Source: Utricularia gibba
Lineage: Eukaryota; Plantae; Magnoliophyta
Length of the DNA: 64,000 nt
Direction of reading: 5' to 3'
Assembly (NCBI GenBank): GCA_002189035.1
Contig: CM007989.1
Coordinates: forward strand, 5,890,001-5,954,000
Both the position numbers and the translations under genes were made by a program. The notes below the pieces were generated by a model. That model worked only from the letters and a program-made list of their open reading frames with translations, did not search any database and had not been told where the DNA came from. Shown one piece after another: positions 33,859 through 60,800 of this stretch. Each line of letters begins with the position of its first letter. The stretch's first letter is position 1.

Positions 33859-34740
33859 TGATAACACTGTTTTTAGTGTGTTTTTATACGTGTTTTTAGG
33901 TATGTTTTATAGGGTTAAATGTTATTTAGTATACTAAATTGTCTTCTTTTGTGTATTTAGTTTACTGAAATGTGTTTATTGTGAAAACACGCTCAATTGA
34001 GAACAATTAAACCGAAACTCTCATTTTACCTCTAGTCTGTGTTTAAGTCTTAACAGGGTAAGAGTTAGTACTGGTAGTGCATTTTCTACATTGACAAGTC
34101 AAAAGGAGCAGAAAAGTTGAGAAAAAGCCACTTTTTGCTGAAAGCAGCCGTCTTCAGAAAAGATAAGATTTGGAGTAAAGATCTTTCTTCTAAAAGCCCA
34201 TGGAAAAGATAGAGATACCCTTACTTTGAGTGGGAAAAAGGAAAGAGGAAGTAGGAGAGAGAAAATGGCGAACAGTAAGGAGCAATGAGCAAAGGAGAAC
34301 GATGATTCTCCGGCTGCCTGCAGATCTACATTTCTCCATCAAATTTCCATCCAGAACTTTCATTTTCAGTAGATTTACGACCGAGAGCAACCGTTGAATA
34401 TTTTATTACTATTTTATGCACTTCCATTTCTATTTTTTAACTTGCTATTGTTACTTTATCTAGGTCTGCAAATGCATGCTTCAAAATATTCTATGCATTA
34501 ATTTTGTGATGTGGCATCTTTGCTCTAGTAAGATCAAGAGTAAGAACTTGAAAAAGCATATTAGACATGAGGTGTTGAGCCTAATTAGAAAGGTAAGGGA
34601 CATATCCTCAAATGTGTGAGCTATTCTTAGATAGTGTTGTAGAACATAATGCTGAAAACACTAGTAGTAATGAAGAGAAATGAAGAAATATTGAATATGG
34701 AAAAAAAGGAGATGGTACTATCGACAATACGATAGTGCAT
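33859..34740 (+). repeat. LTR-like fragment fused to the broken end of the gag ORF
   Basis: Starts TGATAACAC with a T-rich head typical of gypsy LTRs. The gag homology on the opposite strand stops at ~34741. Confidence 0.45.
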
Positions 34741-35487
34741 AAAATCCTCAAGCAAAGAAAGAGCTTCGGTTGGTGTCTTCTTCCTTAAAAATCCTCCTGC
34801 CGCCGAATCTATCATTGCTCGATCAGTGCATAACAATACATCATAGAAATATTTGACCAAGGCATTGGTCTGAAAACTATGGTGTGGGCAGGAGCCCAAA
34901 AGATGATTAAATCTTTCCCAATATTCGTTCAATGATTCTCCACTCATTTGTTCAACATCACTAATTTCTTTTCTGATTCCTTCAGTCTTGGAAACTGGAA
35001 AATACTTGCTCAAGAACACGTTCTTCATTCCAACCCAATCGGTTATGCTTCTAGGCCTTAATGAGTTGAACCACATTTTGGCTCCTCCTTCCAAAGTAAA
35101 CTGGAAGGCTCTCAAAAAAATAGAATCTTCAGTCATCTCAGCTCCCTTGAATGATATACATACAGCTATTACAATGTCTAGATGCTCATGGGGATTTTCT
35201 CCAATTTTTCCATAAAACTTTGGCAAAAAATTTATCATCACCGGTTTTAGCTCGTTTGCTCCATCCTCTGGAAATCTGATGCACAGACCCCTATAAGTAT
35301 GATCAGTAGCATCCAATTCGTTCAAAGTTTTCTTAAGTTCAGCCATTTTGAAATTACTGTTATTCTCGGGTGAGAGCTGCCTCAATCTGCTCGCTTCCCT
35401 AACTCTAACCTTATTCTTGCTGATAACTCTCTCAATTTCTGGGAGGAAAGTGAGATTACCTGCACCAGAAGAACGTAAATGCATCAA
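34627..35487 (-). mobile_element. Athila-type gag ORF (retrotransposon gag domain), 3' truncated
   Basis: The 286-aa ORF contains LPKFYGKIGENPHEHL, LRAFQFTLEGGAKMWF, FLSKYFP, QMSGESLNEYWERF and IDSAAGG. A tRNA-Asp-type PBS (TGGTGCCGTTGCCGGGGA) lies at 35516-35533. Confidence 0.9.
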
Positions 35488-35536: not shown

Positions 35537-38075
35537 TGATAAACGGAAATTTTAGCATATCGTTGCAATAAAACAAACTTCGTATCAAATACATTTATAA
35601 TCCCTAATGCTCACAAAATACAAATTAATCACAAAACGTACAGTGGAATTCAGGGTCAATCACAAGGAGCTTGTGCTTGTCATGTATTTCAGCAAATGTA
35701 GAATTCAAAGTAAACAGTGGTAAATGATAAGTGATTTTGTGTCATTCCAAAACATGTTCTTCCACTACTCTTGAGTGTTGTTTTTACTTATCTTAGACTC
35801 CACTTTCTCATTATTCTCAATTGATTTTGCATCTTTCACACTACTTTGATCTTTTTGGAGGGAAAGTGTATTTTGTGGATTTTTAAGATACTTTTGGATC
35901 AATTTGAGGAGAAATCAAGACCCACCAAATTATGGACTTGATGGACCGCGAATCTCAGCCCAAGACTCGGTCAATGATGAAGATTTGGTCCAAGATTCGT
36001 GGATAAGATAGAGATGTGAAGAAGATCTTCGAAGATTTGGATAGAAGATCTTATCCAAGCCCATCGAATAAGCTCAATACGAAGACTTGGATCTACTCTA
36101 CTATAAATACTCCACCCTCTAAACCATTAGAAATGTCTTTGACCACTTTTACTTTGAATCTTTCCTATTTTCATGTCTATTTTCATGTTTGAGTCGAGTC
36201 TGCGCGTGTAACCGCTTGCGGCTGAGGATCTGCGGTGAAGCCTTGCTTGCGCAAGTCCTGCGCATGTGACTATTTTTTACTATGTTTTTCGACATTTAAA
36301 TTGAGGTTTGATTCTATTTTTTGCAACGTTTTCTTTACCAATGTGATCTTTAGTACCATATAACTCTAAGGGAGTGTGGGAGAATCAAAAGTTGGCCTCA
36401 AGCACCTAAGGAGAAGGGCTCAATCGAACATCATTGATAAGACACATTCTATCTAATCTATCTGCGAGGTGTGAGGTGTAGGGGTTAGATTTGGGTGTGG
36501 ATAAAACATGGGTTATCACAAGAGGTGAAATGGCTATAGTGGCGTGGTTGATTCCATAATCACACTAAACGAGGGACGGTGCTATAACAGTCACCGAGTA
36601 GCACTATTTTAGAATAACACCCCAGAACTTGCGCAAGCAGGTCAGTTTTCAAGGTTTACACACACAAGTTTGGGTGAGTTTTGAGCAAGATGGATCCCAG
36701 GTCCAATGCCATTTTTCTTCTTGTTTTTAAAACCAAATATTTCTTTTGTTTTCGTTCTTTTTGAGTCTTTGTTTGAAAAGAAAATTCCAATAACAATTCC
36801 CTGTGGATACGATCTTATTTTATTACTTCGATGGTTTCTGTGCACTTGCAGAATCAGTAAACAAGTTAGGTAAACAAGATTAGTAAATAATATCAGGTCT
36901 TAACACTAAGGTAACAGGTACTGGTTCTAACTCAAAATAATACTATTGTGCCTTAAGGGTCTACAGGTGGTATAGTACCCAAATTCCTAATTTAATCTGC
37001 CATGTTCCTATACTCAAAACTTCAAGTAGCCTAAGTCTACCCACATCATTCATCATATTTTTGGCTAAGTTAGTCCCTCATATCATCACCAACATTGTAA
37101 TTAGGTCTAACCCCATGCAAGGCATATAGAATTATGTCTACCTGATTCTATTGGTTCTACCCCGGACTAACACCTACTGTTCACGTCTTGATTTGTTGGT
37201 CTACCTCTAAATCAAGCATCTAAGTTGTGAAGCTACTTGTTTCCCTTCTTAGGTCTACCCATGGCTTTATCGAAATAGGAACCAAGGGACAATGGTGAAT
37301 TTTATTAAGACTCCTAAACCCACACTACCATGTTTCACCTTAAAGCACTCCTAGGGTTTAGCTATTCATGCTTTGAAGGTAAAAAGTGATGACATTAACA
37401 TAAAACAATGAAAATGTTAAAAACATTGTGCAGAAGTTGAGTGCAGAAACTACAGACATCAACAAACTAAAAGAAAGCGATAAGTGTTCCGATTTCCATC
37501 TGCCACTGTTTATAGGCTGGAATAGTGGCGCTGGATTGGGTCTTGATGCTGTTCTTGAGGATGAAGTTCTTCTCCTCTTCTAATCGGTGTTCTTCGTGTT
37601 GGAGGTGTTGTTTTTGGTAGAGAAGTCGTCCCCCTCACCGCTGGAGTTTGCTGAATGTTGGAGGGAAAAATCCCCCCGTGTGTATTCTGAAAAGCACGTT
37701 GTCCCCTTGCGATTCTCTATCCTCTCACTTTCTCTTGCCTCCCACTACCCAAGGCAAGTACATTCTCTGACAGTTCTGCTGCTCCTGCCCCTGACTTGCA
37801 GACTGCTATCGGGACAATGTATTCATTGCCTCCTGCTGCGCGGTAACTTACACGAAGTCCTTGATTTTTCCATGATTTTCGGGTAGCTGCGGGGGCTCAA
37901 AATTGGGTTAGAACATGAGTAGCCTAAATCAAAGGATTTAGACCACTAACACACCAAAAATCACATTTTCCTAAATTATATATAAAAATACTTAAAACTA
38001 TAAAATAAACAACTAAACATCACTAAAAACTCATGATTTTCATATCCTAAAAACATGAAAATTTGTGTGCTATCA
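35537..38075 (-). mobile_element. 5' LTR of the Athila element (~1.4 kb net), interrupted by a solo LTR
   Basis: On the minus strand it runs TGATAGCAC...TTTATCA and abuts the PBS. It becomes continuous once 35725-36861 is removed. Confidence 0.75.
35725..36856 (+). mobile_element. Solo LTR of family X (Athila-like), 1132 bp
   Basis: Termini are TGATAAG...GAATCA. The perfect 5-bp TSD GTAAA is at 35720-35724 and 36857-36861. It is homologous to 49471-50590. Confidence 0.92.
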
Positions 38076-41373: not shown

Positions 41374-43720
41374 TTACACACCCCTAATCCTGCAGAAAAT
41401 TGGATTCTCGACTATTTCCTTAGCAGAGGGTCTCCGTACGGGATCAGCATCCAGCATCGCCTGAACATAAAATGAAACTATGGCAACAAATTCAACTGCC
41501 TCCGAACCATTATCATATCATATCACATCATACCTTGATTAAATTTTGAAATTTCAGAGAGTGGCTTGGGAGAAGTGGCAGCTTTCCTTGTCTAAGGTTG
41601 ATAAAATGGGATCCTGAGTCAGGTATGGCCAAGCCTCTGGCAATCTCATAGACCGAAGCTCCCAAACAGAATATGTCAACCTTGTCAAGATGATCAAAAT
41701 TCTCGTTCATAATTTCCTGGGGCATGTAACGTGCATCACCTTCTTCAATTGGCAAGCTTTTATCTATGCGAGTTGCACAACCAAAGTCCCCGAGTTTATA
41801 CACACCATTTTTCACATATATGTTATCCGGCTTCACATCAAGGTGGGCTATCCCACGGCGGTGTAAAAACTCCAATGCCTTCGCCATCTGAAAACTCCAA
41901 GATGCCAATTCAATTATACTTACATGGGAAATCATAGCAGCAAACTAAAATGTTCTTGCTTCTATATTGCTAGTTTCTAGACCTGATATGTTAGATCTAG
42001 AGCCTCAGCTTCGGTCATTAATTTAGGTGGTTTTTTGACAGAAAGGCTGTGATCGCATAGCTCCAATTGAATGAAGAGTTGCTCATTTTCGAACCAAGAA
42101 GAATAGTAGCCAACTATATTCTCATGATACCCTGAAAGAATGAAGCGTCAAAGTAAACTTGAATACACATAAACTACAGGTATAATAAGTGAACCCACAA
42201 GCCCAGAGCAGTCAATCCCTTTTGGCATTCTAGTGGCTTGCCCGTTTCTAATAAGAATGGGTGTTGAAAAACTCAACACCATGTGCCCCCGTGGGGGGGG
42301 GGGATGCTGCTCAAAGAAAAAAAAAAAAAAAAACCAACCTAGAGCAGACAGAGCTTGAACTTCATTCAGTGCCTTGCGCCTGTAACAATGTGTAAAGATT
42401 TTTCTTGCAATGCAACACCAAATATGCAGCTAAGATTACAGGGAGCATCTAGCTACTATGTGAAAATATGATAAATTACCTATCCACATCCTGATGGAGC
42501 TGTTTTTTGCTACGCTTTACTGCATAGCAGCAGCCATCAATCCTCTTGAAGACTTTAAAAACATGATTAAAGTATCCCGTACCAAGTTTCTAGAATAAAA
42601 AAGCATAATCCAGATAAGATACATAGAATTCAAATCAATTCTAAGACGAAGGAATTCGCATAGAAAAAACCTCTATTTCATGGAAATCAGTTCGATATCT
42701 CGATAGACCGTCACCGCCACCTGCTTTAGAGTAAAAATCTGGAAAGGCCAAATAAGCATGGTTAAAGGTCTCATATCAAATTTAAGGCACCCATGGGGAT
42801 TATAAATGATATTCAGACACTTGATACCTCCATTTTTCAATTTTTCAAACCCAAAATGGTCCATGTCACAGTGAGATGCTTCATTAAGGTATGGATTCAT
42901 TAAGCATGGTGGAGGCATCACCCTGCATCGTAGCGCTATTGCAGATTTAGAAACATAACTGCACTTCTTCTGGGTATCCTGGAGCTTTTCGATCTTCATC
43001 TCATCTATTCTCAGCACATCTTCCACAGGATCTGGCATTGATTCACTTGACTCATCCAGATTAACAATATCTGCAGCCGTGGTTTACAAACTCAGAAGTG
43101 ATTGAATCACTGTTTCCATCCCTATTTTGGAATATTTTCACACTATTTCCAATACGCTAGAACATAATCTAGTAGTAAAGAATCACCGCTGGAGAATCAT
43201 AAAACTTAGTTACAAGCACTTATTAGAGACATCGATACCTATTTTTTGCCTTTTGCGACAACTTGTCTTAACCTTTTCTGGTGACTTGGGGCAGGGGAAC
43301 CTTTCCTAAACAATAAGAACGCACAGAGTAAGCTTCTTGTTATATAGGAGTATCACACACGCATTTCTACCTCGTTCCAATCTAAACTTGAAGCAGCATA
43401 GGGCATTTCCGGGGTGATGTAATCCGGTGTGCTGAGGCAAAAAAAAAAAAAAAAAACCAAGAGAAAAATATATGCAAGATGAAGAATGAGGAAAAAGAAT
43501 GTGAGAGTAGCTAAACGCAGTTTACTACACTTCACCAGAAGAAATCCTGACTAAGGATGCAGTCTTTTTCATCGTTTGTGTCTGCATCGGCGCTGAGAGG
43601 CAGAGATAAATGACAGATTTCGGAATCCAAAAGCTTGGGACACGCTGAGACATTTGGGGATTGAATGGAGAGGAGGTGGTCGAGTTGAAAGGTGATATCA
43701 GGCGGAGTGCCTTTCACCAT
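41374..43720 (-). CDS. WEE1: WEE1-like protein kinase, ~454 aa, 10 exons
   Basis: Exons: 43536-43720, 43371-43431, 43239-43305, 42828-43070, 42671-42738, 42480-42589, 42339-42379, 41983-42131, 41534-41887, 41374-41460. All introns are GT-AG and phase-consistent (1365 nt in total). Motifs include ILSQDFFCTPDYITP, CRVMPPPCLMNPYL, GDGLSRY, HLDVKPDNI, DFG and EEGDARYMPQE. Confidence 0.94.
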
Positions 43721-44406
43721 CACCTTCCGGAGCTGCGCTTCTTGTTATTCTTCAAGTTACGCTAGTGGTTGCAGCTGCGATGAAACGAGATCGGCGGTAT
43801 TCGCTGGCAGTCGTGAGAGTGAAGAGCGGAGCGGGGAAGAGTAGAAACTATAAACAAAAAAAAATGGAAAATGGTTCGAATGTGGCGGTTGGGGTGAGCT
43901 GAGGCGGGAAAAGTAGGGTTTCGGCAAAACGCCAAGCGTCCCTCTAGTTTTCGAATTTGTGTTTTCTTGAATTGGGAATAGGATTAATTAACAAAATAAT
44001 CCTCTACGAAAAATTCATTAGATATATAGTACTATTTGATAAATATTGATTAAATAGCCTTCTTGTGTTTTATTTGTTAAATAATAATATTTTTTTTATA
44101 ATTGGTTTTGTGTCATTTTAAAACATATTTTTTTCATTACTTTTAAGTATTGTTTTCAATTATACTCTATTTTTTATACTATTTTTTTATATAGAAAGAA
44201 TATTTAATGAATTTATTGGATATTTTTTAATCAATTTAATGAAAAATCAAGATACAACAATTTATAAATTTGATGAGTCACGAATCCTAGTCCAAGACTT
44301 CATCTAAGAATGAAGATTTGATGAAAGATTAGTGAATAAAATAAAGATTTTAAAATGATTTTAAAAAAATTAAATAAAAGATTTAAATATAAAATTTTAT
44401 CCAACT

Positions 44407-47399
44407 TAACCGTGGGCATGGGTCATAAACCACTGAGTCACGGGTCAATCAAACCAGGTCATGCTCTGGGTCATGGGTAGACGAGTTGCAGGTCAACGGG
44501 TTTTAACCCTTGACTCAACCTGTACCCGTAGGTCATGCGAGTACGGGTTGTTGGGTTGTGACCCGTCGATGTGTCAAAGGGAGAGAGATGGGGCGGGGCT
44601 TGACAAGAGAGGTATGGCATTGAGAGAGGAGGTATGGTGTGAAGATTGATGGGATTGTTCCATCAAGTACATGTACCATAAAGCAATTATTTATGTATAT
44701 GAAACAAATTTTTGTATTTTCTTCAAAATCACCTTATGAAATATAAGTAAAATTAAAATGAATCAATATACAAAAAAGGTAATACAATAATATAAAAGTT
44801 TTCCCTCTTTTTTTTTCCAGACTTAGACTAGCTGTGTAGTTTAAAACAACACAGTTGAAGTTAAAACTTTTTTTGCTAATTTAAGATAATATTAAATGAA
44901 TAAAAAATTAAAAAAAAATGTTTACTCTTTTTATGATGTAGAACTATCATCTTCCTTATCATCATCTTCTTCATCTAAGATAAGATTTTGCATTCTATGG
45001 TCTGCTCCAATTCAATCCTTTAAATAAATGCAAACCTCCAATATTTTATTTGCTAATTTGAGCCGCCATGATGACAATACTCTCCCACCTAAATTGAATG
45101 CACTTTCCGATACAACTGTAGACACAAGGGATGTGAAAATTGCCCTAGCCACTGCTGCTAAAGCAGGATAAACTGAGGATTGACCCTTCTATCGAGCCAA
45201 AATATCAAAGTTGTCTCCTTTATGCTGCACTTGATGCATTACATTATATAAAGCAATCTCATTGGTTTTTGTGATAATGCTAGGAGAAGCTGAAATCATA
45301 GTATAAAAATCATCTATTCCTGAAGGTTGGTCTGATTCAGCTACCTCAAAAACAGATCTAACACAGCAAATCTTATTCTCAAATAAGTCATACAAATGAT
45401 TTAAAGCATTGATAGCAGTATTATACACAGCATTAGATTGACATAATGGAAATTTAAGATAATAAACATAAGAACAATAAACATTCAAACCAGTTTGTAA
45501 ATCAACAACTTTAACTCTCGGATAAAGTATATTGGAGACAAGGAAGAGAATAAGAACATTGAGAAAATACTTAACGAATTTTTCAACCATAATTGAAACA
45601 TTTTCTCACAAAAACTCAACTTCAACATATTTTTTAAATGTATTTGAAATAGTAACTAAAGGTGGTAGTACTAAATGTGTTGTAGGATAATAACAACACT
45701 AAATAAAATAATATATTTCTCAAAAACGTCAAGCATTTCACACAAAGTCTGAAATTTAAAAAATATTTCAGAATCAATTGAACAATTTTGATCAACATGC
45801 ATTCTCATAAATAATGGAATAATACTCTTATATGAAAATAAAAATCTGAACATGTGAAGAGTAGAATTCTATCTAGTTGGACAATCTTTTTTTAAAATTC
45901 TATATGCAATGCCTCTAACCTCATAAATACTTTTGAAAATGTCTCTTTTAGGACTAGATTTTTTTCACCAATTTATGCAATGAAACAAGAGCATCTACAA
46001 AATTATATATTCGTAAAGCATCTTGTAAACATAAATTCAAAATATGACATATACATCTCGAATGAAAAAAAAACACCACCTAAAGGAGGATTTATGGAAG
46101 ATTTCAAGCCTGAAATAGCATTTGAATTGTTAGAAGCATTATCAAGAGCAATTGAAAATATACGTTCAATAATACCATATTCAACAGAAACACTAGTAAT
46201 CAACTGAGCAATTTGGGCACTTGTGTGTGGAGTGTCATAAGGTCTAAATGCTAAAACTCTTTTTTGCATAATCCACAAATTATCAAGCCAATTAGCAGTG
46301 ACAACAATATAATCTTCACCATTATTACCATGCCAACCATCAGCAAACAATGCAAATCAATATTTTAGAGATTGAAATGAAGAAATTAAAGCTGTTTTTT
46401 TCTTTTCAAATTGGTCAAAAGTAATCCGAATAGCTTTTCCTCTAGAAAAAGACAGAAAATGAGGTTGCAATCAAGTTTTAAAAAAATTTGACATAAATGT
46501 ATTTTCAACTTTAGTAAAAGGTTTTTCATTAGCTATCAAAGTTAGAACATAATCAATTTGGGCTAATTCATTATCAAAACTAAATTTAATAGCAAGATTA
46601 CCTACGACAATATTCAAAGTAGATTGAAAAACATTACTAGTGTATCTATCAGTATGCTTGTTCACTATATGTCTCAAAAAATTCAAAGTTGAACCATCTT
46701 TTCCATGTTTATAAGAAATATGGCAGTATTTGCATATTATCTTTCCTCTTATCAAATCATGAACAAAGTGCTCATGTCAACAAAATTCATATTTTCTTTT
46801 GTTTGAAGATGGGCTAGCCTCTAGAATTTCAAAATCATTCTCTGGAAATTCGGATTCATCATCTAAATTAACCACAGGATGAGATGCCAAAGGATTGGAT
46901 GATTGCTCAATCATATTCGCGTTGAGGATTTGAGGAGGAGAAATTGGATAAAAAAGATGTTGCATTACAAATTGTTAATTCTCATTTTTTAAACCCTAGA
47001 CGTATGCATGTTAATGGACAGCCCAAAAGCCTAGTTGGATCAAAGAAACAAAATATTCATTATCATATTGTGACATTGTGATAAAGGAATACTATTATTA
47101 ATTATGTGCACTCTCTTTCTTCATCATTCAATCACATTTAATAAGCTGCATTCAATACTTGCATAAGGGTAGTCATTCTATGCATATGATTACAATGGGC
47201 CGGATATTAGGTCTGAACCAAACTTTATCTCAATTTGGATTGGGCTTTAATGGGTTAGCCCTATCCGGCGGGTCAATCCGTTCTCGTTTTAGGATGACTT
47301 GACCCGTACTTGTATAGTACGAGTACGGATAACCCGTTCCCGTATAGTACGAGTTGACCCATGGGTCGACGAGTCAACCCACAACTGTGCTCACCACTA
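44407..47399 (-). mobile_element. Decayed full-length hAT (Ac-like) transposon with transposase pseudogene at ~44990-46965
   Basis: Fragments include a BED finger (ICKYCH...GSTLNFLRHIVNKH), the DDE region (ADGW...YIVVTANWLD...IALDNASNN), ILYPRVKV, and a dimerisation-domain remnant (TVVSESAFNLGGRVL). Imperfect TIRs are TAACCGTGGGCA and TGCTCACCACTA, with subterminal ACCCG/CGGGT motifs. The flanks ATCCAACT and ATCCAATC match 6/8. The ORF is frameshifted. Confidence 0.88.
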
Positions 47400-47459
47400 A
47401 TCCAATCCTATAAAACAAATCCAATATGAAGATTTCAATTTTTCTTCTATAAATACCCT

Positions 47460-47990
47460 ACTCTCTTAATCATTAGAAACATATTTAGACCACTTTTCTT
47501 TTTTATTTTTTCTCATTTTTGTATTTATTTTCATGTTAGAATCAAGCATATACATGTAGTTGTTCGTAGCTAAAGATTTGCAGTGAAACCTTGTTTGCAT
47601 AAGTCTATGAGACTAATTTACCATGTTCCTTTACATTGAATTTAAAGTTTGATTCTATTTTTTGCCAACATGTTATTTAGTGCCTCATAACCTCAAGAGA
47701 GTATGATAGAATCATGAATTGACTTTAACCATCCAAGGAGAATGATTCAATTGGACATTATTGATAAAACATATTTTGTCTAATCTGTTTACGAGATGTG
47801 AAGTGTAGAGATTAGATTTAAGTGTAAGAAAAACATGAGTTATTATAGGATTTGAAATGACTCTACATGCTTGATTCTATAATCCTGCTAAACTAGGAAT
47901 GATGCTATGACAGTTATTGAGTATCACTATTTTATAATAATACACCCAAAACTTGTGTAACCAAGTTAATATTCAAAAAGATTGTAGGGT
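47460..47990 (+). repeat. Old decayed copy of LTR family X (3' half); smaller fragments at ~17070-17200 (-) and ~44280-44350 (+)
   Basis: Diverged match, judged by eye, to 36200-36660. Confidence 0.55.
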
Positions 47991-48660: not shown

Positions 48661-48926
48661 AAGGACCTAGATGTTAGCGCAAAGCCGAAGCACAAAAACA
48701 ACACGGATTTGATCGCTGGAGCTTCAGAGACTTGAGGGCTCCAAATCTAGTTTATTGTCTAATGCACATCTGTTTTCAATAAAGAGATATTATTGTTTGA
48801 TGAAGGGCAAAGTTGAAAGATTTGAGCTGTATTTACCATTCTGTGAATGCAGTCTGCTGTTTTACTTTAACATCATTTTATAATTGTATTGTGAATCGAG
48901 GATCCATAATTTCATCCCAGTGTTAG

Positions 48927-49099
48927 GTGGAGAAAGCTGGCAGTCATCACGGTTTCTGCAGGAGGATCCCCCTACTTCAATACCATCACCGCTGCCCATG
49001 ACGGGATACCACGGGTATGGGTTTCCAGGCCCCTGGGGAAGTGATCCTCCAGATTCGGGTGGAGATCCACCACCATCGCTGCCTCCCACCAGCCCATAA
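48927..49099 (+). pseudogene. Orphan inverted copy of peptide-gene exon 2, lacking exon 1 and the signal peptide
   Basis: TGTTAG|GTGGAGAAAGC...CCCATAA reads GESWQSSRFLQEDPPTSIPSP...PPTSP on the + strand. The supplied track labels the 48884-49099 ORF as minus, but it translates on +. The duplication breakpoint at 48837 lies inside the intron. Confidence 0.7.
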
Positions 49100-49130
49100 C
49101 TTTCGTCTCCGGTTGACGGGAAAACCTCCG

Positions 49131-49253
49131 GTCTATTGCACTGCCTTTTGGTTTGTCCAAGTCGTTGTTTGGTCTATCGCACTGCCTTTTGGTTTGTCCA
49201 AGTCGTTGTTTGGTCTATTGCACTGCCTTTTGATTTGTTCAAGTCGTTGTTTG
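49131..49253 (+). repeat. 41-bp x3 minisatellite in the peptide-gene 3' region, mirrored at ~54260-54382
   Basis: The unit GTCTATTGCACTGCCTTTTGGTTTGTCCAAGTCGTTGTTTG occurs three times with few substitutions. Confidence 0.92.
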
Positions 49254-49470
49254 CATGTCTGCTTCGATAATTCAATGTATATGGGTTTTATATGACTTTG
49301 GTACCAAAAGCGTGAAACTTTTAAATTTAAATGGATATGAAAAGTGTTATTAAATGGGATACATGATTGTCATTTTTTTTTATTGAACTTTCAATAATTA
49401 TAAATCAACAACAATAATATTTTAGATCCATCTATAAAATTCAATATCAATTTCTTTTTGTCAATAAATC

Positions 49471-50690
49471 TGATAAGTAATTTTGTGTCGTTCCAAAACA
49501 TGTTCTTCCACTACTTGAGTGTTGTTTTTACTTATCTTAGACCCCACTTTCTCATTATTTTCAATTGATTTTACATCTTTCACACTACTTTGATCTTTTT
49601 AGAGAGAAAATGTATTTTGTGGATTTTTAGAATACTTTTAGATCAATTTGAGAAGAAACAAGATCCACCAAATTATGGACTTGATGGGCCACGAATCTTA
49701 GCCCAAGACTTAGTCAAACGATGAAGATTTGGTCCAAGATTCGTGGATAAGATAGAGATGTTAAGAAGATCTTCGAAGATTTGGATAAAATATTTGGATA
49801 GAAGATCTTATCCAAGCCCATCGAATAAGCTAAATACGAAGACTTGGATCTACTCTACTATAAATACTCCACCCTCTCAACCATTAGAAACGTCTTTGAC
49901 CACTTTTACTTTGAATCTTTCCTATTTTCATGTTTGAGTCGAGTCTGCGCGTGTAGGCGCTTGCGGTTGAGGATCTGCGGTGAAGCCTTGCTTGCGCAAG
50001 TCCTGCGCGTGTGACTATTTTTTACTATGTTTTTCGACATTTAAATTGAGGTTTGATTCTGTTTTCATTACCAACGTACTCTTTAGTATCATATAACCCT
50101 AAGGTAGTGTGGGAGAATCAAAGGTTGGCCTCAAGCACCTAGGGAGAAGGGCTCAATCAGACATCGTTGGTAAGACACATTCTGTCTAATCTATCTGCGA
50201 GGTGTAAAGTGTAGGGGTTAGATTTGGGTGTGGGGAAAACATGGGTTATCACGAGAGGTGAAATGGCTCTGGTAGTGTGGTTGATTCCATAATCCCACTA
50301 AACGAGGGACGGTGCTATAACGGTCACTGAGTAGCACTATTTTAGAATAACACCCCCAGAACTTGCGCAAGCAAGTCAGTCTTCAAGGTTTACAGACAGA
50401 AGTTTGAACGAGTATTGAGCAAGATGGATCCCAGGTCCAATGCCACTTTTCTTTTTGTTTTTAAAACCAAATCTTTCTTTTGTTTTCGGTCTTTTTGAAT
50501 CTTTGTTTGAAAAGAAAATTCCAATAACAATTCCCTGTGGATACGATCTTATTTTATTACTTTGACGGTTTTTGTTCACTTGCAGAATCACCATCAAGTT
50601 TTTGAATTCCCTGTGGATACGATTTTATTTTATTAATTTGACAATTTCTATTCACTTGCAGAATCACCATCAAGTTTTTGGCGCCGTTGC
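49471..50690 (+). mobile_element. LTR family X 5' LTR with a tandemly duplicated 3' end and a truncated Asp-type PBS
   Basis: Starts TGATAAG at 49471. The block AATTCCCTGTGGATACGAT...CACCATCAAGTTTTTG occurs twice (~50529-50604 and ~50605-50680). TGGCGCCGTTGC follows at 50679-50690. Confidence 0.88.
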
Positions 50691-50734
50691 TATGTTTTGG
50701 AAATAGAAGTAAGGCTAGCATGTTTTGGAACGAA

Positions 50735-53700
50735 ACTCAAGAGTAGTGGAAGAACATGTTTTAGAACGACACAAAATCATTTATCAACTCCCCCACACTT
50801 AGATATTGCTTGTCCTCAAGCAATTGTTCAAGGTATTTTACTCCAAAGTAGTAATTTGCAAATAGAAGTAAGGCTAGCAAAATGCATGAGTTATTCAATG
50901 GTACACCATCCACTAGCCCTCCTTGCACTTAGCTACTCCTCACAAGTCACTCAATACGCTCAAAACAAGAAATCCATAAGAGGAGGATGAAATGAAAAGA
51001 GGATCGCTCAATACCTGAATGTAGGCGAGTCAGTAAACTTGCGCAAGTGATCCACTAGTTTCAGCAAGCTTGCGTAATCATGAGGTCTTTTTTTCGGGTT
51101 GTAGCACGGCAGGATCTTGGGACAGGTAGGAAATTCGGTTGGAGGCTCCATTTCATGAGTAATAAGGAGTGAGCATCCATCAAACAATTATGTCATGCTT
51201 ACCTTTTGATTTTCGTACTCCAAGTAACTCCTTCTCTTTCATCTTTGTGGCTTCTTTTCAACACTTTAGCCTTTTTCTTTCTTCTTCTCTCTCTCTCTTT
51301 TTTTTTGATTCTTTCTTTCTTTTTTTTCGAAAGTGATCTGTCTCTTGCATAGGATGTCTGTTTGAAATCCCTTCACAATTTTTTGAGATAGAGCTTGATC
51401 ACTAAGTTGAAAATTGCTCTCAACTTTTCTTCTTTTGTAATAGAGCTCCTGGTTCTGCAGCTTGTGCAAGCAAATGAATAGTACTGTTCTCCAGATGCTT
51501 GTTCCTTGGGTCAAGAGAAATTGCAGTAAGCTATAATTATAGAAATGGATTTGGCTTTTGATGTGGTGATCCAAATAAAAGGGTTTTAGGCTAAGCGGGG
51601 CTCACAAAGCGGATTCAAGGTGGGATATTAGGATAAAATAGGGCAAATCCTAATGCGTCAATCCCGTTGCGCAAGACATGTAGAATAACCCAGCAGTATA
51701 CACAAGAACATGCTCATGATCGTGGTACATTCAGGTCACTCATAAAGAAAAGAGAATACAAGTGTCTCCTCACCAAGAAAGTAGGGCTATGTAGCTTGTG
51801 CAAGGAGTACAAAATGAATAGCATGCAAAAGAATACCTTAGCAAGAAGCCTGCCAAAATTCTAATGCACAGGAACTATCTTGAAGAAATAATACCAAAAA
51901 TAAAAGCTTAAGTTCCAGCAAAACACCAAATGTAAGGTTGTAATAAGTTAGTAAATAAAATCACATTCCATTTGCAGAAAAATGAAAATGATAATTCTCC
52001 TCCACACTTGAATAAGAACTTATTTGCAAAGCTTGAAGAAATTTGACCTGAATCACTTATTCTAAAAAGTAGAATTTTCTTCATCTGGACAACCAATATA
52101 AGTTGCATGGCATGTGCATTTTCGTGGTCATTCATATCAGCCTGTTCGCAACTTTTAAATGCAGAAACCTCATTGCACAAGTTGCAATGATACTTGCACA
52201 AACATACTGGACATATATCAAAACTCATAAACCAACTTGTTTTTGAATGGCAACAAGTAAGCCATGCCTTGGTAAAAGATTAATGTGGTCGGTATGGAAA
52301 TGTGTGAAAGCGAAGAGCAAACCTCTTGAATTTTCCATGCAGCTTCTTCCACTTCCTATTGCTCCAGAATTTATTTTGAAAGAGCCCCTTGGTGGCACAA
52401 ATCACAGCCCATCTTGATCTCAAATTTCTTGCAAAAAACTAATGCATTGAAGAGAAAACAGAAACTTCATGACATTTTATACGTCTCATCTTGCGTAAGT
52501 GCCCATCACGCCATGTTTTTGTTTGCTCTTTGTACAACTCAAATGGAAAGCTCCAGTGCATGGAATCAATGCATAGAATTGTGATCGAAGCTTCCTTGAG
52601 TTGCTGCATTCTACAAAAGAAATCTTTGTTAAAAAAAAAAACATATTCTTCAACTAAATTCTCACTTGTGATGACAAGTTCTTCTTCTTTCAAATCTTTT
52701 TCTATGAAACTTAGGGACCTTTGAACCTCCTCTTGATGTGTGTCCTGATCACATAATTCGTGGGTGTGGTCCTCAAAAAGATCTACTGCTTGCAAATGTT
52801 CATGTGTAACACAATCTGCTTCTGCAGCTCGCGCAAGGTCAAGGACACGCATCGTTGGAACTCCATCTTCAATTTCAATATCCTCGCATCTAGTGGGGGT
52901 CTCTTCCAATTGACATGAATACTCTGATGTACAGATGGCTTCCAAATCATTCAATTGAGCTTTCAGCATTTGATTTTTAGTTGTAAGTTGCTGCAACTTG
53001 TCATTCATGCCATGCAATCTCTTCATTTGATCTGAAAATTCTTCTTTCACTTGCTTGAATTGCCCAATGACCCCATCTTTCATCTTCTTGATTTGATCAA
53101 ATAATTCATTATTCATCTGCTCTTATCTTTCAATGATTTGACTCAACATATCTCTCAAGGATGGACATTCAGGTTGTCTCCAACCATGATTTGAGTTTTG
53201 TTGGTTGTCAACCTGATTTGCATGACTTTCTCCTTGTGCAAGTCTGATATAATACCTCATGAATTTCTCCTCTAACTCTTCATCTTCAGAATCACTTCCA
53301 AAATCATTGTCCTTTGAATCTAATGATGAATGAGATTGATACCTGGTGTATTGTTGCTTTTTGGACCTCCAATCTTTTTCGTACCCAACATCATTATAAT
53401 AAGCATGAGATTCATTCACAGTCCTTTCTCTGGTGCAGTAATGATTTCTTGCTGGAAGTGGATTTTGTTTTTTCGTCCATGCTTGCGCAAGCATCAATTG
53501 ATCTCTATTGTACTTGCGTAATGGCTTCACCGCAGATCCTCAACCGCAAGCGCCTACACGCGCAGACTCGACTCAAACATGAAAATAGGAAAGATTCAAA
53601 GTAAAAGTGGTCAAAGACGTTTCTAATGGTTGAGAGGGTGGAGTATTTATAGTAGAGTAGATCCAAGTCTTCGTATTTAGCTTATTCGATGGGTTTGGAT

Positions 53701-54039
53701 AAGATCTTCTATCCAAATATTTTATCCAAATCTTCGAAGATCTTCTTCACATCTCTATCTTATCCATGAATCTTGGACCAAATCTTCATCGTTTGACTAA
53801 GTCTTGGGCTAAGATTCGTGGCCCATCAAGTCCATAATTTGGTGGATCTTGTTTCTTCTCAAATTGATCTAAAAGTACTCTAAAAATCCACAAAATACAT
53901 TTTCTCTCCGAAAAGATCAAAGTAGTGTGAAAGATGCAAAATCAATTGAAAATAGTGAGAAAGTGGGGTCTAAGATAAGTAAAAACAACACTCAAGTAGT
54001 GGAAGAACATGTTTTGAAACGACACAAAATTACTTATCA
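50735..54039 (-). mobile_element. Internally deleted, pol-less family-X element: half 5' LTR, gag-linker-like ORFs, PPT, start of 3' LTR
   Basis: The LTR half is at 53523-54039. ORFs 53123-53530 and 52439-53116 share one frame, split by a TAA. The PPT CTAAGTGTGGGGGAGT is at 50787-50802 and the 3' LTR start is at 50735-50786. No RT or integrase motifs were seen. Confidence 0.78.
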
Positions 54040-54676
54040 GATTTATTGACAAAAAGAAATTGATATTGAATTTTATAGGTGGATCTAAAATATTATTATT
54101 GTTGATTTATAATTATTGAAAGTTCAATAAAAAAAAATGACAATCATGTATCCCATTTAATAACACTTTTCATATTATTGATTAATAACACGTTGTTTAA
54201 TAACAAAGCTACCAAAGTCATATAAAACCCATATACATTGAATTATCGAAGCAGACATGCAAACAACGACTTGAACAAATCAAAAGGCAGTGCAATAGAC
54301 CAAACAACGACTTGGACAAACCAAAAGGCAGTGCGATAGACCAAACAACTACTTGGACAAACCAAAAGGCAGTGCAATAGACCGGAGGTTTTCCCGTCAA
54401 CCAGAGAAGAAAGTTATGGGCTGGTGGGAGGCGGCGATGGTGGTGGATCTCCACCCGAATCTGGAGGATCACTTCCCCAGGGGCCTGGAAACCCATACCC
54501 GTGGTATCCCGTCATGGGCAGCGGTGATGGTATTGAAGTAGGGGGATCCTCCCGCAGAAACCGTGATGACTGCCAGCTTTCTCCACCTAACACTGGGATG
54601 AAATTATGGATCCTCGATTCACAATACAATTATAAAATGATGTTAAAGTAAAACATCAGACTGCATTCACAGAATG
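53523..54676 (-). repeat. Right arm of the inverted duplication
   Basis: Reverse complement of 48837-49987. The outer breakpoint reads CAGAATG|TCTGC. Confidence 0.95.
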
Positions 54677-54880
54677 TCTGCTTTTTCAGTGAGAAATTGG
54701 ATGAATCATGTATAGCAGGCAGGGAGAGGCATAGACAAAAAGAAACAAATGTGCATCGATTAGGGGAAAGAAAGTACGTGAAAACTCCTGGATTTTCCTG
54801 CTCGCTTCACTTGAAGTAATCAGGAGGAGGAACAGAACCACTACTGGAGCAACCTTCGTCATTCCCCAAGAGCTGAGCAT
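54414..54880 (-). CDS. Predicted small secreted Pro/Gly-rich peptide precursor (91 aa, or 85 aa from the 2nd ATG), 2 exons; family not recognised
   Basis: Exon 1 is 54778-54880, a U-rich GT-AG intron spans 54587-54777, and exon 2 is 54414-54586. The phase-1 splice joins them in frame: MLSSWGMTKVAPVVVLFLLLITSSEASRKIQEFSRGESWQSSRFLREDPPTSIPSPLPMTGYHGYGFPGPWGSDPPDSGGDPPPSPPPTSP. A TATAAAA lies at 54899-54905. There is no expression evidence. Confidence 0.62.
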
Positions 54881-54898
54881 CTTCAATTGGTGTATGCG

Positions 54899-54942
54899 TT
54901 TTATAGAGGTCAATTTTTGCTGTCCTTTTCGCTAACTTGACC
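54899..54942 (-). promoter_or_regulatory. TATA box and two W-box (TTGACC) motifs upstream of the peptide gene
   Basis: TATAAAA at 54899-54905; TTGACC at 54908-54913 (minus) and 54937-54942 (plus). Confidence 0.5.
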
Positions 54943-55143
54943 AAGTTTTCATGTAGTTGAACAAGTCTTAATAGCACAGCAGCCGCGCAATCCCTTAGCG
55001 CCACTTTCGTAGATGAGATTGGAATAAGTTGAATTATAATTATTTAGGTTATTTGATAGATTTACATTTAATTAGCTTTAAAGAATTTTTATATTTGATA
55101 TCTTGAAAACAAAATACTACAAAAAACTGATGCATACACACAT

Positions 55144-55754
55144 GTATTATCTTAGTTCTAAAGTTCAACAACAAATGACACATAACATAAACATAAACTG
55201 TCAATAGTTCTCACGGAAAAACGACAACAAATCCCAGCTAGGAATAGTGTTTTTCATAAGTAGAAGAAATCTTTAAAAGATGGCTTGAATCATGAATCGT
55301 CTTATTCGTTTCTTCCTATAAGTTTTTCTCAAATCTCCTCCCATTTTCCAGAGGTGTGTGGTGTGTTATTCAAGGGGGTAGAGATATTTTCTTCCCCTCA
55401 TCATTCAAAAAATCTTCTTTTTTTCTTCACCTTAGGATTTCGTGTACTTCATTAAGCTTTTGTCCTTATTTCATGTAACTTCACTGTTCTCTTTCGAATC
55501 TTTGGGATTTGAGTTGCTGACATATGTTTTATTGCTCAAAGTAACTATTAGAACTAAGTCACAAAAGAGTAGAAATACATAATAAGCTTGAGTTTTTTAG
55601 CAAATTATTAGTTATTTTTTTATTCTTAAATACTCAAAAATATGTTTTATCACATTATCCAAGACTAGACTTGTTCTCTAGTCCTAACTAAGATTAACAG
55701 GCGCTAAGCAGTCAAAGAACTTCATGAGCAGAGATGTCAACACTCAACCCTTCA
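55144..55754. repeat. Filler segment copied from 58329-58945 (LTR-derived)
   Basis: Direct-repeat homology runs from GTATTATCTT through ACACTCAACCCTTCA. Confidence 0.85.
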
Positions 55755-56098
55755 CTTGAAGTAATCAGGAGGTGGAACAGAACCACTACAGGAGCAACCT
55801 TCGTCATTCCCCAATAGCTGAGCATCTTCAACTGGTGTATTGTGAATTGACCTCTACTTTTATAGAGGTCAATTTTTGCTGTCCTTTTCACTAACTTGAC
55901 CAAGTTTTCGTGTAGTTGAACAAGTCTTAATAACACAGCCGCCACGCAATCCCTTAGCGCCACTTTCGTAGATGAGATTGGAATAAGTTGAATTATAATT
56001 ATTTAGGATATTTGATAGATTTACATTTAATTAGCTTTAAAGAATTTGTATATTTGATATCTTGAAAAAAAAATAATACAAAAAACTGATACATACAT
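55750..56098 (-). pseudogene. Tandem duplicate of peptide-gene promoter and exon 1, truncated after ITSSE
   Basis: Matches 54805-55140. The ATG is at 55825 and reads MLSYWGMTKVAPVVVLFHLLITSSE, then runs into filler sequence to a stop at 55712. It carries an L>H change in the hydrophobic core. Confidence 0.72.
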
Positions 56099-57899
56099 AT
56101 ATATATAATTTGATTAATTAATTGGTTTAACCTTTAAATTAATATTTAATATTAATTTTCCTTCCATCTCTAAAACCGAGTCTCCCCCCTATGCCATATA
56201 CCAGCAATCCCAAAGTAAATCTTTACTTTGGAATCCATGTAATTTTCTTTTTCACTTGTCTTCATCAGATAATCATGGACAGAGGGAGAAATATTAGGAA
56301 GAAGACTATTCAATTGAACAATGATGACAAGAATTTTGCGGAAAATTTGGCAACAATAACAATCCATCAAATTCTAGTAAGGCAACAACAAACAAGGTTA
56401 GACAATGCAAGAAGACTTATTTCTTATATGATTGATGCCACATAAGAAACAAAAATTTACAATGTCGTTAAAATTGCAAATTATTTTATCAAATAAATTT
56501 ATAAATCTAATTCATATCCAATCATATAACAATTATGAGCATAGTGAATTATGGTCGAATACAAGGAGCTATGTGTTTGTTGTGTAAAAGTTTATGCATG
56601 CTGTTTTGTCATGGTTAAGAGATTATGTATAGGCTAACACAAATTCTATTTAGTGATAAAATACAATAAAGAAAAGTAATAAATTATTGAAATCAGTTGT
56701 TGACTAAGATGAGATGGGGTGATGTGTTGGAACTCTTAGGATTAGTATGCAAATTACTACAACTATCCCACTGTTGCGTGTCGTTTCCTCAATAAATTTA
56801 AATTTAAAAAACGTAAAACACAAAAGAGCGTAGTACGAGTGTCAATCTCAAAAAGTTGAGTTTTGCGAAAAATGTTTTGTAGAAAACTTTTACAAATTGT
56901 CACGAAATTGTAAAAGGGAGTTTTTGAAATGCAAAAATACAAGTTACTATGTAAGTAATGGACCTTGAGTATGGTACACAGTTCCTGGGAAATGCACTCT
57001 GTTTCCTTCTTTTGTTTATCCTTGCCTCGGTTTTACTGATTCCTTCCGAATAGCTTGTTATAGAAGCAAGGAATAGCCTACTCTCCCTTACACTCTAATT
57101 GATAAAGAGGCACGGGAATAGCCTCATGCGGTTCCCCCTTGGACGATTGAGAAGACAATAAGATTGTCATCGATTGTCTTTAAAACCCACGTGTGTCCAA
57201 CTGTTGCCAATGACCAATGGCGAATACGAGGTCACTACTCGTCCACTGTTGCGGTATCTCGGTCACAAACAATTCGCTAATTCCCTCGAATTGATAGGGT
57301 TGCAAATGATGCTCTTCACCTTGCTCTTCATCAAATTTCACGAGGAGTGGCATGCTACTCATAGATCATGATTAGAAAACGTTACAGAAAGACTGCATAA
57401 AGAAGCATGGAAGCATGCAAAATCCGAAATGAATTCAGTAAAGAACCGAGAATTGCACTCAAGACTTAGAAGGAAATTTTATTTACTCTCAAAAAGTAAT
57501 AGTGTCAAAGGGCCATGGAAACAAAAAAAAAATGGAAAACTCTAGTGTTCTTCTTCCTTTGGAGGAGAGGAAGAATCAAAAGTTCTATATGTAAGAACAA
57601 AGTGTCAAAAGGTCAAAAGTCCAAAAATAAGTGTTCCAAATTGGTTTTATCTCACTCCTCACACGCATTAACTTCTTCTGGTCCCCTTCTCATCATTCCT
57701 TCTGTCTTACGGGCACCATCAGCTTTCTCATGCATGCAAGTAAGCATTCAATCATTGCTGTAGACTCTGACATGTCGTAACTCAGGGACCTTGACTAATA
57801 TCAGTTTTCCGCTCACAATTGTACCAAGTCACGTGCAAGGCACAAAAAGTTAGAGTCTAGTCTAAAGTCACAATTGTACCATCCTACAACACTCCACAC

Positions 57900-60800
57900 T
57901 ACCTCCTACCACATTTCAGTCAAAGTACACGAAAAGGATAACGAAAATATACACAAAATAATTATCAATATAAATTCTAAATTGGACGACTTAACACTAG
58001 ATTCATACATAATAATACATAATAATAAGTATAAAATGACACTTAACACCCACCTAAACCATAAATCATTCATCTAACAAACAAAGCTTTAAGAACCAAA
58101 CTCTTGTTTTCCCTAATTTTTTGTCTATCTCTAATTAGGGTTGGTCTAGTGAACTTCACTATTTCCCTCTCCTGAATCTATCCTAAATTGTTAAGAAAAT
58201 AATGTGATTATGTGTTAAATGTGGTTTAATGAACAACAAACATGTAACTCCTTTTGTCCCCAGGCACTATTAGATGCTTTAGCTATTCATGATAACAGAA
58301 TGTAAAACACTTTCATGACATATTATAAGTATTATCTTGGTTGTAAAGTTCAACAACAAAAGGCACATAACAGAACCATAAACTGTAAATAGTTCTCACG
58401 GAAAAATGACAACAACTCCCAACTAGGAATAATGTTTTTCATAAGCAAAAGAAATTTTCAAAAGATGGCTTGGATCATGGTTCGTCTTCAAAAGAGGTGT
58501 GTGGCATGTTGTTCAAGGGGTTAGAGATATTTTCTTACCCTCATCATTCCAGAAATCTTCTTTTTCTCTTATCAGGAAGACAAGCAAAACAAAAATAATC
58601 TTTCAGCTTTTCTCTTATATTTTTTGTGTACTTCATTCAGCTTTTGTACTTATTTCATGTAACTTCACTATTCTCTTTCGGCTCCTTGGGATTTGGATTG
58701 CTGACATATGGTGTATTGCTCAAGAGAACTATTAGAACTAAGTCACAAAAGCATAGAAATACATTATAAAACTTGAGTTTTCTAGCAAAATACTAGTTAT
58801 TTTTTTTATTCTTAAATACTCAAAAATATGTATTATCACACTATATTACAACGATATTAGACTTATCCTACAGACTAACTAAGACTAACAGGCGCTAAGC
58901 AGTCAAGGAACTTCATGAGCAGAGATGTCGACACTCAACCCTTCAGCTCAAAATGCATGAATTAAAAATGTGCAAGTCTTGGTTGTCACTCAAGTATACA
59001 TGATAGCTTCATCAAGAAAAGTACCTTCAAAGATTAAATAAGCAAATATGACATGTTTTCACTTCCAAAGGGCTATTGGTTGTTAACATTTTTTTCCTTC
59101 TTTCTTTCTCTTCTTTTTCTATTTTTTTTTTCATTCGAAGGTTCAGATAGAAGGAAGCTATGGTTTCGCTCAGGTTATTGTTGTTCCCTTTCTCTTAAGT
59201 CCAGAGTGTGGACTAAGCACTCCCCTCCTTGTTCCTCCTGAGAATTCTCCTACTCCTCTAAGCTATCCCACAACTACCTTTCTCTTGTTGCTCCAATGTC
59301 TACACACGCTCTTTTGTTTATACTGCTTTTCAAGACTTGGGTCTCATTGCTTTTTAGGTGATGATGCTTTTCTGACCCCATAATCTTATGATCCTCGATT
59401 TCCTTGACAACTAGTATCCCATGAGAGAACAATGCATGCCAACTTGCATAAAATTTTTTTTTGAATGCACTAATTTGACTACATTGAACATGCTACTATC
59501 TCATGAAAATGATCAAGGAAAAATGCATGCTCATGGGTATATAAAAGGCTATAACAAAAGTCATGCATTTTGTGCATCATTGAAAAGTGTCACGTCCTTG
59601 TAAAGGGATTCCCCAACAGCACACAAGAGTCTCCAAATCATGCATCGAGCTACGAAAGTAGTCCTAGCTTAGAGTAATATAATAAAAATAAAAATAAAAA
59701 TAAAAAAATAAAAATGAAAATAGAATAAAACACACCAAATGCATCGATTATTACTTGATCAAGGAGGAGTCTTTCACTATCTAGTTCAATTTCTTTACTT
59801 CCCACAGCAAGTCCCCAAGCCTATTATACACCATGCCAATTATGGACTTGCAGCAGCAGTTTTTCATACTTTTCAGTTCGTTTAGTCCCTGGAAGGTGCT
59901 TTCCTTTTCCTTTTAATGAGGTGCTTTAATGTAAAGCCTTGCAAGAGACTTAAAAACAAAACCTTCCCCCCTAGCTTGAATTAGGCCAACAATTTTAAGA
60001 GAATGTGCATTCAAATGAGCTAATTTTGTTTCTACATGGAAGAATTTTAACTTGGAAGTTTTATTAGAGCACAACCTTTGAGCAAGGAAAGTGATTACAT
60101 TATTGAACCCAAGATGGTTTATGGTATTCCTCTAATAATTCTTATTCATTTGTTCCACTAAAATTGCTCCTAGATTCAAGGATTTCATGTGCAACAAGCA
60201 CCACATGACAAACAAATCACTTTTATATAAAGAATTGAATCCTAAGGTTCTATCGAAAAGCAAAGCATAAATAAGCAAGTGAACACATCGTATAGTAGGG
60301 TCTGCGAATAAATCAGCACATTTTGCCCCTTTTACCTCATTATACCTGGTTGTGAATTCTTCATCATCAAAGTGTAGGTATTTGAGGTTGAGCATCTCTA
60401 CAAGTTGCTTGAAGTAGGGAATGCCCTTGTTGGTCATTTTTCATTGTGATTTCCTGATGAACGCTGGAATGGGTTTGCTAAATGTCGCACTTTAGTACAT
60501 TCAACGCATCAAAAGAAATTTATAAACCTAGTTATTCAACTATACAAATTACAGGAATTAATGTAGTGTGACAAGCAAAGATCAAATTTACAAGGAATGG
60601 TTACAATTTCCTGAAGTTGATTACATTTACTAAAAACAGGGGTTTTTTGAGAATTTAGCTCTAATGTGTGTAAAACATAAAATAGCAATAGCTGAAATAA
60701 ACGAGTTGTAGAGATGAAGAGGCATTGAAATTACCGTGAATGTGCAAAAAATATAAAATAAAAGTGATTTGGCTAGGTTTTACATCAGAATCTAGCTCTT

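Follow-up and report, generated by a model that had tools for sequence, protein, structure and literature searches.

The window, that is, the whole stretch of 64,000 nucleotides of Utricularia gibba DNA analysed here, carries on its minus strand two separate ORF fragments that can be joined through a phase-1 GT-AG intron into a single reading frame of 91 codons (34 codons, one split codon and 56 codons). The original prediction had proposed exactly this join, and both fragments and the splice dinucleotides are present in the letters. The frame and the elements directly upstream of it are laid out as follows:

54880, minus strand: start ATG of the proposed ORF, with a second in-frame ATG at 54862
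54880-54778, minus strand: proposed exon 1 (34 codons and one further nt), encoding an N-terminus that resembles a signal peptide; its first 76 nt (54805-54880) are the part that has a tandem duplicate
54777-54587, minus strand: proposed intron of 191 nt, with donor GT at 54777-54776 and acceptor AG at 54588-54587
54586-54414, minus strand: proposed exon 2, 56 codons and the stop codon TAA (54416-54414), wholly within inverted arm B
54905-54899, minus strand: TATAAAA, located 25 nt (first T to A of the ATG) 5' of ATG 54880 and 43 nt 5' of ATG 54862
54908-54913 (minus strand) and 54937-54942 (plus strand): two TTGACC W-box cores upstream of the ORF

The deduced N-terminus runs from a polar start ending in Lys (MLSSWGMTK) through a 12-residue hydrophobic run to TSSEA/SRK, and inspection of the translation thus recovered the hydrophobic N-terminus ending in SEA/SRK that had been described before; the TATA box and the two TTGACC motifs claimed to lie directly upstream were likewise found in place. 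The 56 residues of exon 2 include 16 Pro, 9 Ser and 8 Gly, and no Cys. The GC content is 49% in exon 1, 36% in the intron (T = 40%) and 60% in exon 2, a gene-like contrast, and the splice sites read CAC/GTACTT (donor) and GTTAG/GT (acceptor). The intron is composite, with 54677-54777 being single-copy and the remaining 90 nt (54587-54676) forming part of inverted arm B.

Elsewhere in the window, an intact single-exon gene for a fasciclin-like arabinogalactan protein (18868-20109, plus strand; Pfam Fasciclin) has its best relatives, at 73-78% identity, in the Lamiales (Sesamum, Rehmannia, Paulownia and Genlisea). A protein-kinase exon, which by eye we take to be WEE1-like, is located at 41528-41935 (minus strand). 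Also present are a reverse-transcriptase (RVT_2) tail, copia-type in appearance, at 7026-7928 (plus strand), a retrotransposon gag ORF at 34627-35487 (minus strand) and the remains of a hAT-type transposase at 45189-46755 (minus strand), whose BED zinc finger (Pfam E = 1e-5) spans 46471-46755; the ORFs flanking the zinc finger, without a Pfam match, resemble hAT transposase by eye. Finally, two adjoining ORFs of 135 and 225 codons at 52439-53530 (minus strand), separated by a stop codon plus one codon, are rich in coiled-coil-like acidic sequence. Neither of them matched Pfam, the 225-codon spacer ORF gave only weak unrelated matches in the ESM Atlas, and together they may represent a decayed repeat-encoded protein.

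Homologues were sought for each exon separately. For exon 2, no candidate was retrieved by a word-index search of 5.8 billion proteins, the 71-codon ORF containing it had no true match by phmmer against 1.84 billion representative proteins, none of five ORFs across four reading frames of the exon-2 patch matched Pfam, the PDB contained nothing related, the ESM Atlas gave no usable match, and no exon-2 relatives were found among metagenome contigs. The sole phmmer match of the exon-2 ORF, a 3163-residue protein in which 23 Ig-like repeats each match weakly, was discarded as spurious, and a single exact 20-mer match in a metagenome was attributed to chance, the contig having a GC content of 62% and the similarity not extending beyond the match. 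The search for exon 1 was narrower in scope, and its 75-codon ORF retrieved nothing from a word-index search limited to proteins of 41-131 aa and nothing from Pfam. The exact protein of the neighbouring fasciclin-like gene is absent from the protein collection, so the proteome of this plant is not represented there, and the blanks refer to other annotated plants and not to the annotation or transcripts of this species. Within that scope, neither exon has a relative or a clear match to a known family, in support of the lineage restriction that had been put forward. The possibility that exon 2 is a piece of a known longer gene was rejected on the blank phmmer, Pfam and PDB searches, as was that of a structured RNA or miRNA-like hairpin in exon 2 (folding z = +0.45; no Rfam match over 47-60 kb).

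The frame was also compared with the known families of small secreted plant peptides and Pro-rich proteins. IDA/IDL peptides are defined by a C-terminal S(G/A/V)PS core followed by (R/K)(R/K)HN, PIP/PIPL peptides by an SGPS core plus GxGH at the extreme C-terminus, and CEP peptides by a C-terminal SPG(I/V)GH (PMC4526919). Regular-expression searches of both exon translations found no S[GAV]PS and no [RK][RK]HN (a relaxed SIPS occurs at exon-2 residue 17, which is not C-terminal), no GxGH at any position, the C-terminus being PPTSP, and no CEP motif. The proposed product resembles IDA, PIP and CEP precursors in its length below 110 aa, its signal-peptide-like start, its poverty in Cys and its Pro-containing C-terminal part, whereas it lacks their defining motifs and, unlike the intronless IDA-family genes, is modelled with an intron. 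CLE peptides carry a C-terminal motif of 12-13 residues with the core P.GP[DN]P[LIV]H[NH], and Tyr-sulfated peptides (PSK, PSY, RGF/GLV and CIF) an Asp-Tyr (DY) sulfation motif. By the same searches, the CLE core, DY and the YIYTQ of PSK were all absent from both exon translations, in agreement with the statement that PIP, CEP, IDA, CLE and PSY motifs are lacking.

With the HypSys precursors of Solanaceae and Ipomoea, the frame has in common a secretory precursor (putative here) and hydroxylatable Pro/Ser stretches, represented here by one PPS and one SPPP. HypSys peptides are hydroxylated, glycosylated, wound-inducible and defence-eliciting peptides of 15-20 residues, reported only from Solanales, whereas this plant belongs to the Lamiales; their precursors are longer (~146-291 aa) and contain several peptides each. 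No related plant protein was detected by phmmer among the 1.84 billion representatives, and the likeness to HypSys is therefore one of composition only, as the original prediction had put it. Similarly, the SPPP motif and the high Pro and Ser content recall extensin-like and hydroxyproline-rich glycoprotein modules, but extensins differ in their repeated SP3-5 and YxY cross-linking motifs, instead of which the frame has a single SP3, and no Pfam match was obtained.

The openness of the frame, its in-frame GT-AG join and the nearby W-box cores are all expected by chance at this locus, which is a caution for small-ORF hunting in general. In composition-matched random copies, the exon-2 patch remains open for at least 56 codons with P = 0.33 in the given frame and P = 0.70 in any frame of the strand, and much of the GC-rich patch is covered by four overlapping ORFs of 62-92 codons in different frames and on both strands. 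The interval between the exon-1 ORF and the exon-2 ORF contains 10 GT and 10 AG sites, six pairs of which are in frame. The proposed donor, with G neither at -1 nor at +5, scored ~0.2 bit on a rough plant matrix, approximated from published plant logos and suited only to the ranking of sites. Of the canonical, U-rich intron that had been claimed, the GT-AG ends and the T content stand, while the strength of the splice model is not supported, given the weak donor and the alternative in-frame joins. TTGACC was found 36 times in the window against 32 expected, with further close pairs elsewhere, and at this background density the enrichment of W-boxes was rejected and the argument built on them is not supported. 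TATAWA occurs at 1.5 per kb per strand. With the usual spacing between TATA box and transcription start, the TATA box, only 25 nt away, would place ATG 54880 at or before the start of transcription and would leave ATG 54862 a leader of ~10-18 nt.

The signal-like start, on the other hand, is fairly unusual among the ORFs of the window. The criteria for a signal peptide were charge within a short opening stretch, 7-15 hydrophobic residues as its core and small side chains at positions -3 and -1 relative to the cut. Exon 1 shows these features by eye and passes a crude, home-made heuristic, as do only 4 of 312 other ATG ORFs of at least 30 codons (~1.3%). Given the 314 such ORFs of the window, chance alone would yield about four that look signal-like. 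Segments of 173 nt with a GC fraction of at least 0.55 make up 1.4% of the whole stretch and are located in the fasciclin-like gene, at two further spots and in both inverted arms. CC dinucleotides are distributed 16/5/4 over the codon positions of the proposed frame; this 3-periodicity has P = 0.036 against shuffles, a value reached by 11% of genomic windows, and is accounted for in part by a (CCN)n-like run near the stop codon, at the 3' end of the patch.

Exon 2 lies inside one arm of a large inverted duplication, composed as follows:

48837-50001: inverted arm A, with a copy of exon 2 inside, running unbroken into the rest of a TIR element
53512-54676: inverted arm B, holding exon 2 together with its 3' flank and 90 nt of the intron, then a truncated TIR element (first 531 bp)
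48927-49099, plus strand: exon-2 copy of arm A, without exon 1 or promoter upstream
49471-50786: TIR element of ~1.3 kb bounded by 58-bp terminal inverted repeats, found again at 35725-36856 (90%)
54260-54383: minisatellite of three 41-bp units, 93% identical, beginning ~30 nt past the stop codon; in arm A at 49130-49253

The arms measure 1.17 kb each and are separated by a spacer of 3.5 kb, the whole fold-back (48837-54676) spanning 5.8 kb. In each arm, 637 bp that occur at no third place in the window adjoin the initial 531 bp of the 1.3-kb TIR element, and the two arms differ by ~17 substitutions in ~1120 bp (~1.5%) and by one replaced patch of 30 bp. At the outer ends no target-site duplication was found, and the sequences next to 48837 and 54676 have no direct repeat in common, which argues for a segmental duplication and not a transposon; the interpretation of the arms as transposon termini (foldback or MULE-like) was rejected for this reason and for the 637-bp part that has no other copy in the window. 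The TIR element crosses the inner end of arm A unbroken, a single HSP joining it to the copy at 35725-36856. Because only arm A continues into the rest of this element, arm B is probably the derived copy and arm A the native source, a polarity based on parsimony that a later deletion in arm B would reverse.

The TIR element itself is non-coding and without a clear target-site duplication; its terminal inverted repeats begin TGATAAGT, and a 76-bp unit is repeated in tandem inside it, at 50529-50680. Relatives of greater divergence were found at 16745-17386, 44181-44404 and 47397-47976. The inner-end breakpoint of the inverted duplication falls at a short palindrome, CTTGCGCAAG, within the element, and a similar palindrome is located ~30 nt further into the spacer.

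The promoter and the beginning of exon 1 are duplicated as well, in direct orientation:

55750-56109, minus strand: partial duplicate, at 91-96% identity, of the promoter together with codons 1-25 of exon 1, without exon 2
55144-55754: segment R, recurring at 58329-58945; the tandem unit consists of R, the promoter and the exon-1 start (0.95 kb)

The source of this duplicate is 54805-55150, where the promoter is followed by the initial 76 nt of exon 1. The similarity of the upstream copy ends exactly after ...AGTGAAG, where it enters segment R, and comparison of the three junctions revealed that the upstream copy combines the left side of copy 1 with the right side of copy 3, with TGAAG in common, the signature of a 0.95-kb tandem duplication. 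The upstream tandem unit was subsequently split by a 2.2-kb insertion. Exon 1 at 54880-54778, continuous with 128 single-copy bases (54677-54804) that contain the donor, is thus the native, complete copy. By their divergence, the tandem event (~5%) predates the inverted event (~1.5%). All other copies of either exon in the window are fragments without a donor and without the partner exon; as exon 2 itself sits in an inverted duplicate of recent date, a coherent gene is not supported. In the upstream promoter copy (55838-55872, minus strand), a 14-bp insertion after TATAAAA has produced a perfect 10-nt inverted repeat, TTGACCTCTA ... TAGAGGTCAA, which flanks the TATA box, and has added a third TTGACC core.

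Between arms A and B, exon 2 differs at two positions, both of them replacement changes (R/Q and P/L) and both CpG transitions, and CpG losses over the inverted arms are distributed across both copies. Three differences separate the exon-1 copies, two of them replacements and one silent, a divergence similar to that of the promoter. No evidence of selection on the ORF was found in these comparisons of exon-1 and exon-2 copies, and the differences look neutral, with counts too small for proof.

Taken at the level of the sequence, the two halves of the ORF were probably united recently, through local DNA duplications. The stages that we count as established begin with a promoter-like stretch and a signal-peptide-like exon 1 in their native context (54677-55150), possibly the leftover 5' end of an older gene. 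A 0.95-kb tandem duplication then placed a second copy of the promoter, with 76 nt from the start of exon 1, further upstream, and a patch rich in GC and in CCN was left 190 nt 3' of exon 1 by a later inverted duplication of 1.17 kb. We further infer that, with arm B and its exon 2 as the derived copy, the pairing of exon 1 and exon 2 would be only as old as the inverted duplication, and that a weak GT and a usable AG would preserve the frame by happenstance. The product, if transcribed and spliced, would be a secreted, Cys-free, disordered Pro/Ser/Gly-rich protein of ~65 residues after signal cleavage, with one SPPP site as a candidate for hydroxylation and arabinosylation. As such, and provided that it is secreted, it would add one more species-restricted small Pro-rich secreted protein to the many that plants have, whose functions are mostly unknown. 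The more instructive point is the origin, the breakpoints indicating that ordinary segmental duplication, by which new genes are documented to arise, probably joined a signal-peptide exon to a Pro-rich one.

On balance, we lean towards a chimeric and young origin of the 91-codon frame, in which local rearrangement within an interval rich in repeats produced an ORF that is at most a proto-gene; an established peptide-hormone gene it probably is not. Against the chimeric origin count the signal-like start with its TATA box, the gene-like GC contrast, the rare in-phase GC patch and the arm polarity, which is parsimony-only. A rival that we consider less likely is the one of the original prediction, a genuine gene that is expressed, restricted to the species and encodes a small secreted, Pro-rich (hydroxyproline-glycosylated) protein or peptide precursor; arm B would then be the original and arm A a by-product copy of the 3' half. 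It draws on a signal-like N-terminus of a kind that the heuristic recognised in only ~1.3% of the other ATG ORFs, the upstream TATA box, an AT- and U-rich intron flanked by GC-richer exons, and proline codons in phase with the frame within a GC patch of a kind seldom met in the window. Small secreted proteins that are Pro-rich and lineage-specific form, moreover, a recognised class, surveyed in Triticeae (PMC10020141), with which the frame shares its shortness, few exons, signal-like N-terminus, richness in Pro, lack of homologues and repeat-rich setting, but from which it differs in an exon pairing that appears to be only ~1.5% divergence old. Such a gene is nevertheless difficult to reconcile with the lack of any relative in the annotated proteomes searched (this plant's not being in the collection) and with the neutral-looking substitution pattern, and it needs an extra deletion to explain the truncated TIR element in arm B. 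Its donor would be one without G at -1 and +5, and its TATA box would, at the usual spacing, lie too near both ATGs for more than the short leader calculated above.

It is improbable, in our estimate, that neither half was ever coding and that the frame results from coincidences in repeat-derived DNA, the GC patch and its minisatellite being an unrecognised repeat or a captured fragment. The frame was picked post hoc from many small ORFs (314 ATG ORFs of at least 30 codons, ~4 of them signal-like by chance), the four overlapping ORFs of 62-92 codons cover much of the GC patch in several frames and on both strands, the (CCN)n-like 3' run explains part of the 3-periodicity, and the setting is rich in repeats (TIR element, BED zinc-finger hAT-type remains, gag fragment and reverse-transcriptase fragment). 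Coincidence is, however, at odds with the 637-bp arm part, which is without other copy in the window, and with the clustering of a signal-like start, a TATA box and a GC patch of a rare kind, all on one strand and within 300 nt, the chance of which is a few percent by a rough, post hoc estimate. The chimeric origin favoured here has a more specific variant, gene birth by exon capture, in which the inverted duplication, ~1.5% of divergence ago, would have put a proline-codon-rich patch behind an existing promoter and signal exon and so given rise to a new gene for a secreted Pro-rich protein, and the partner 4.9 kb downstream might feed back through read-through hairpin RNA or siRNAs; to this variant we assign quite a low probability. 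Inverted duplication of the 3' part of a gene is a proposed origin of hairpin small-RNA loci and young plant miRNA genes, as outlined in 10.1101/2024.07.25.605110. To the model as outlined there, the locus compares in geometry only, with an antisense copy of exon 2 and its 3' flank 4.9 kb downstream on the same transcription axis, and it differs in its 1.17-kb arms, its 3.5-kb spacer and an exon-2 region that alone has no special fold. Read-through transcription from 54880 would give an RNA capable of pairing over >1 kb within the fold-back at 48837-54676.
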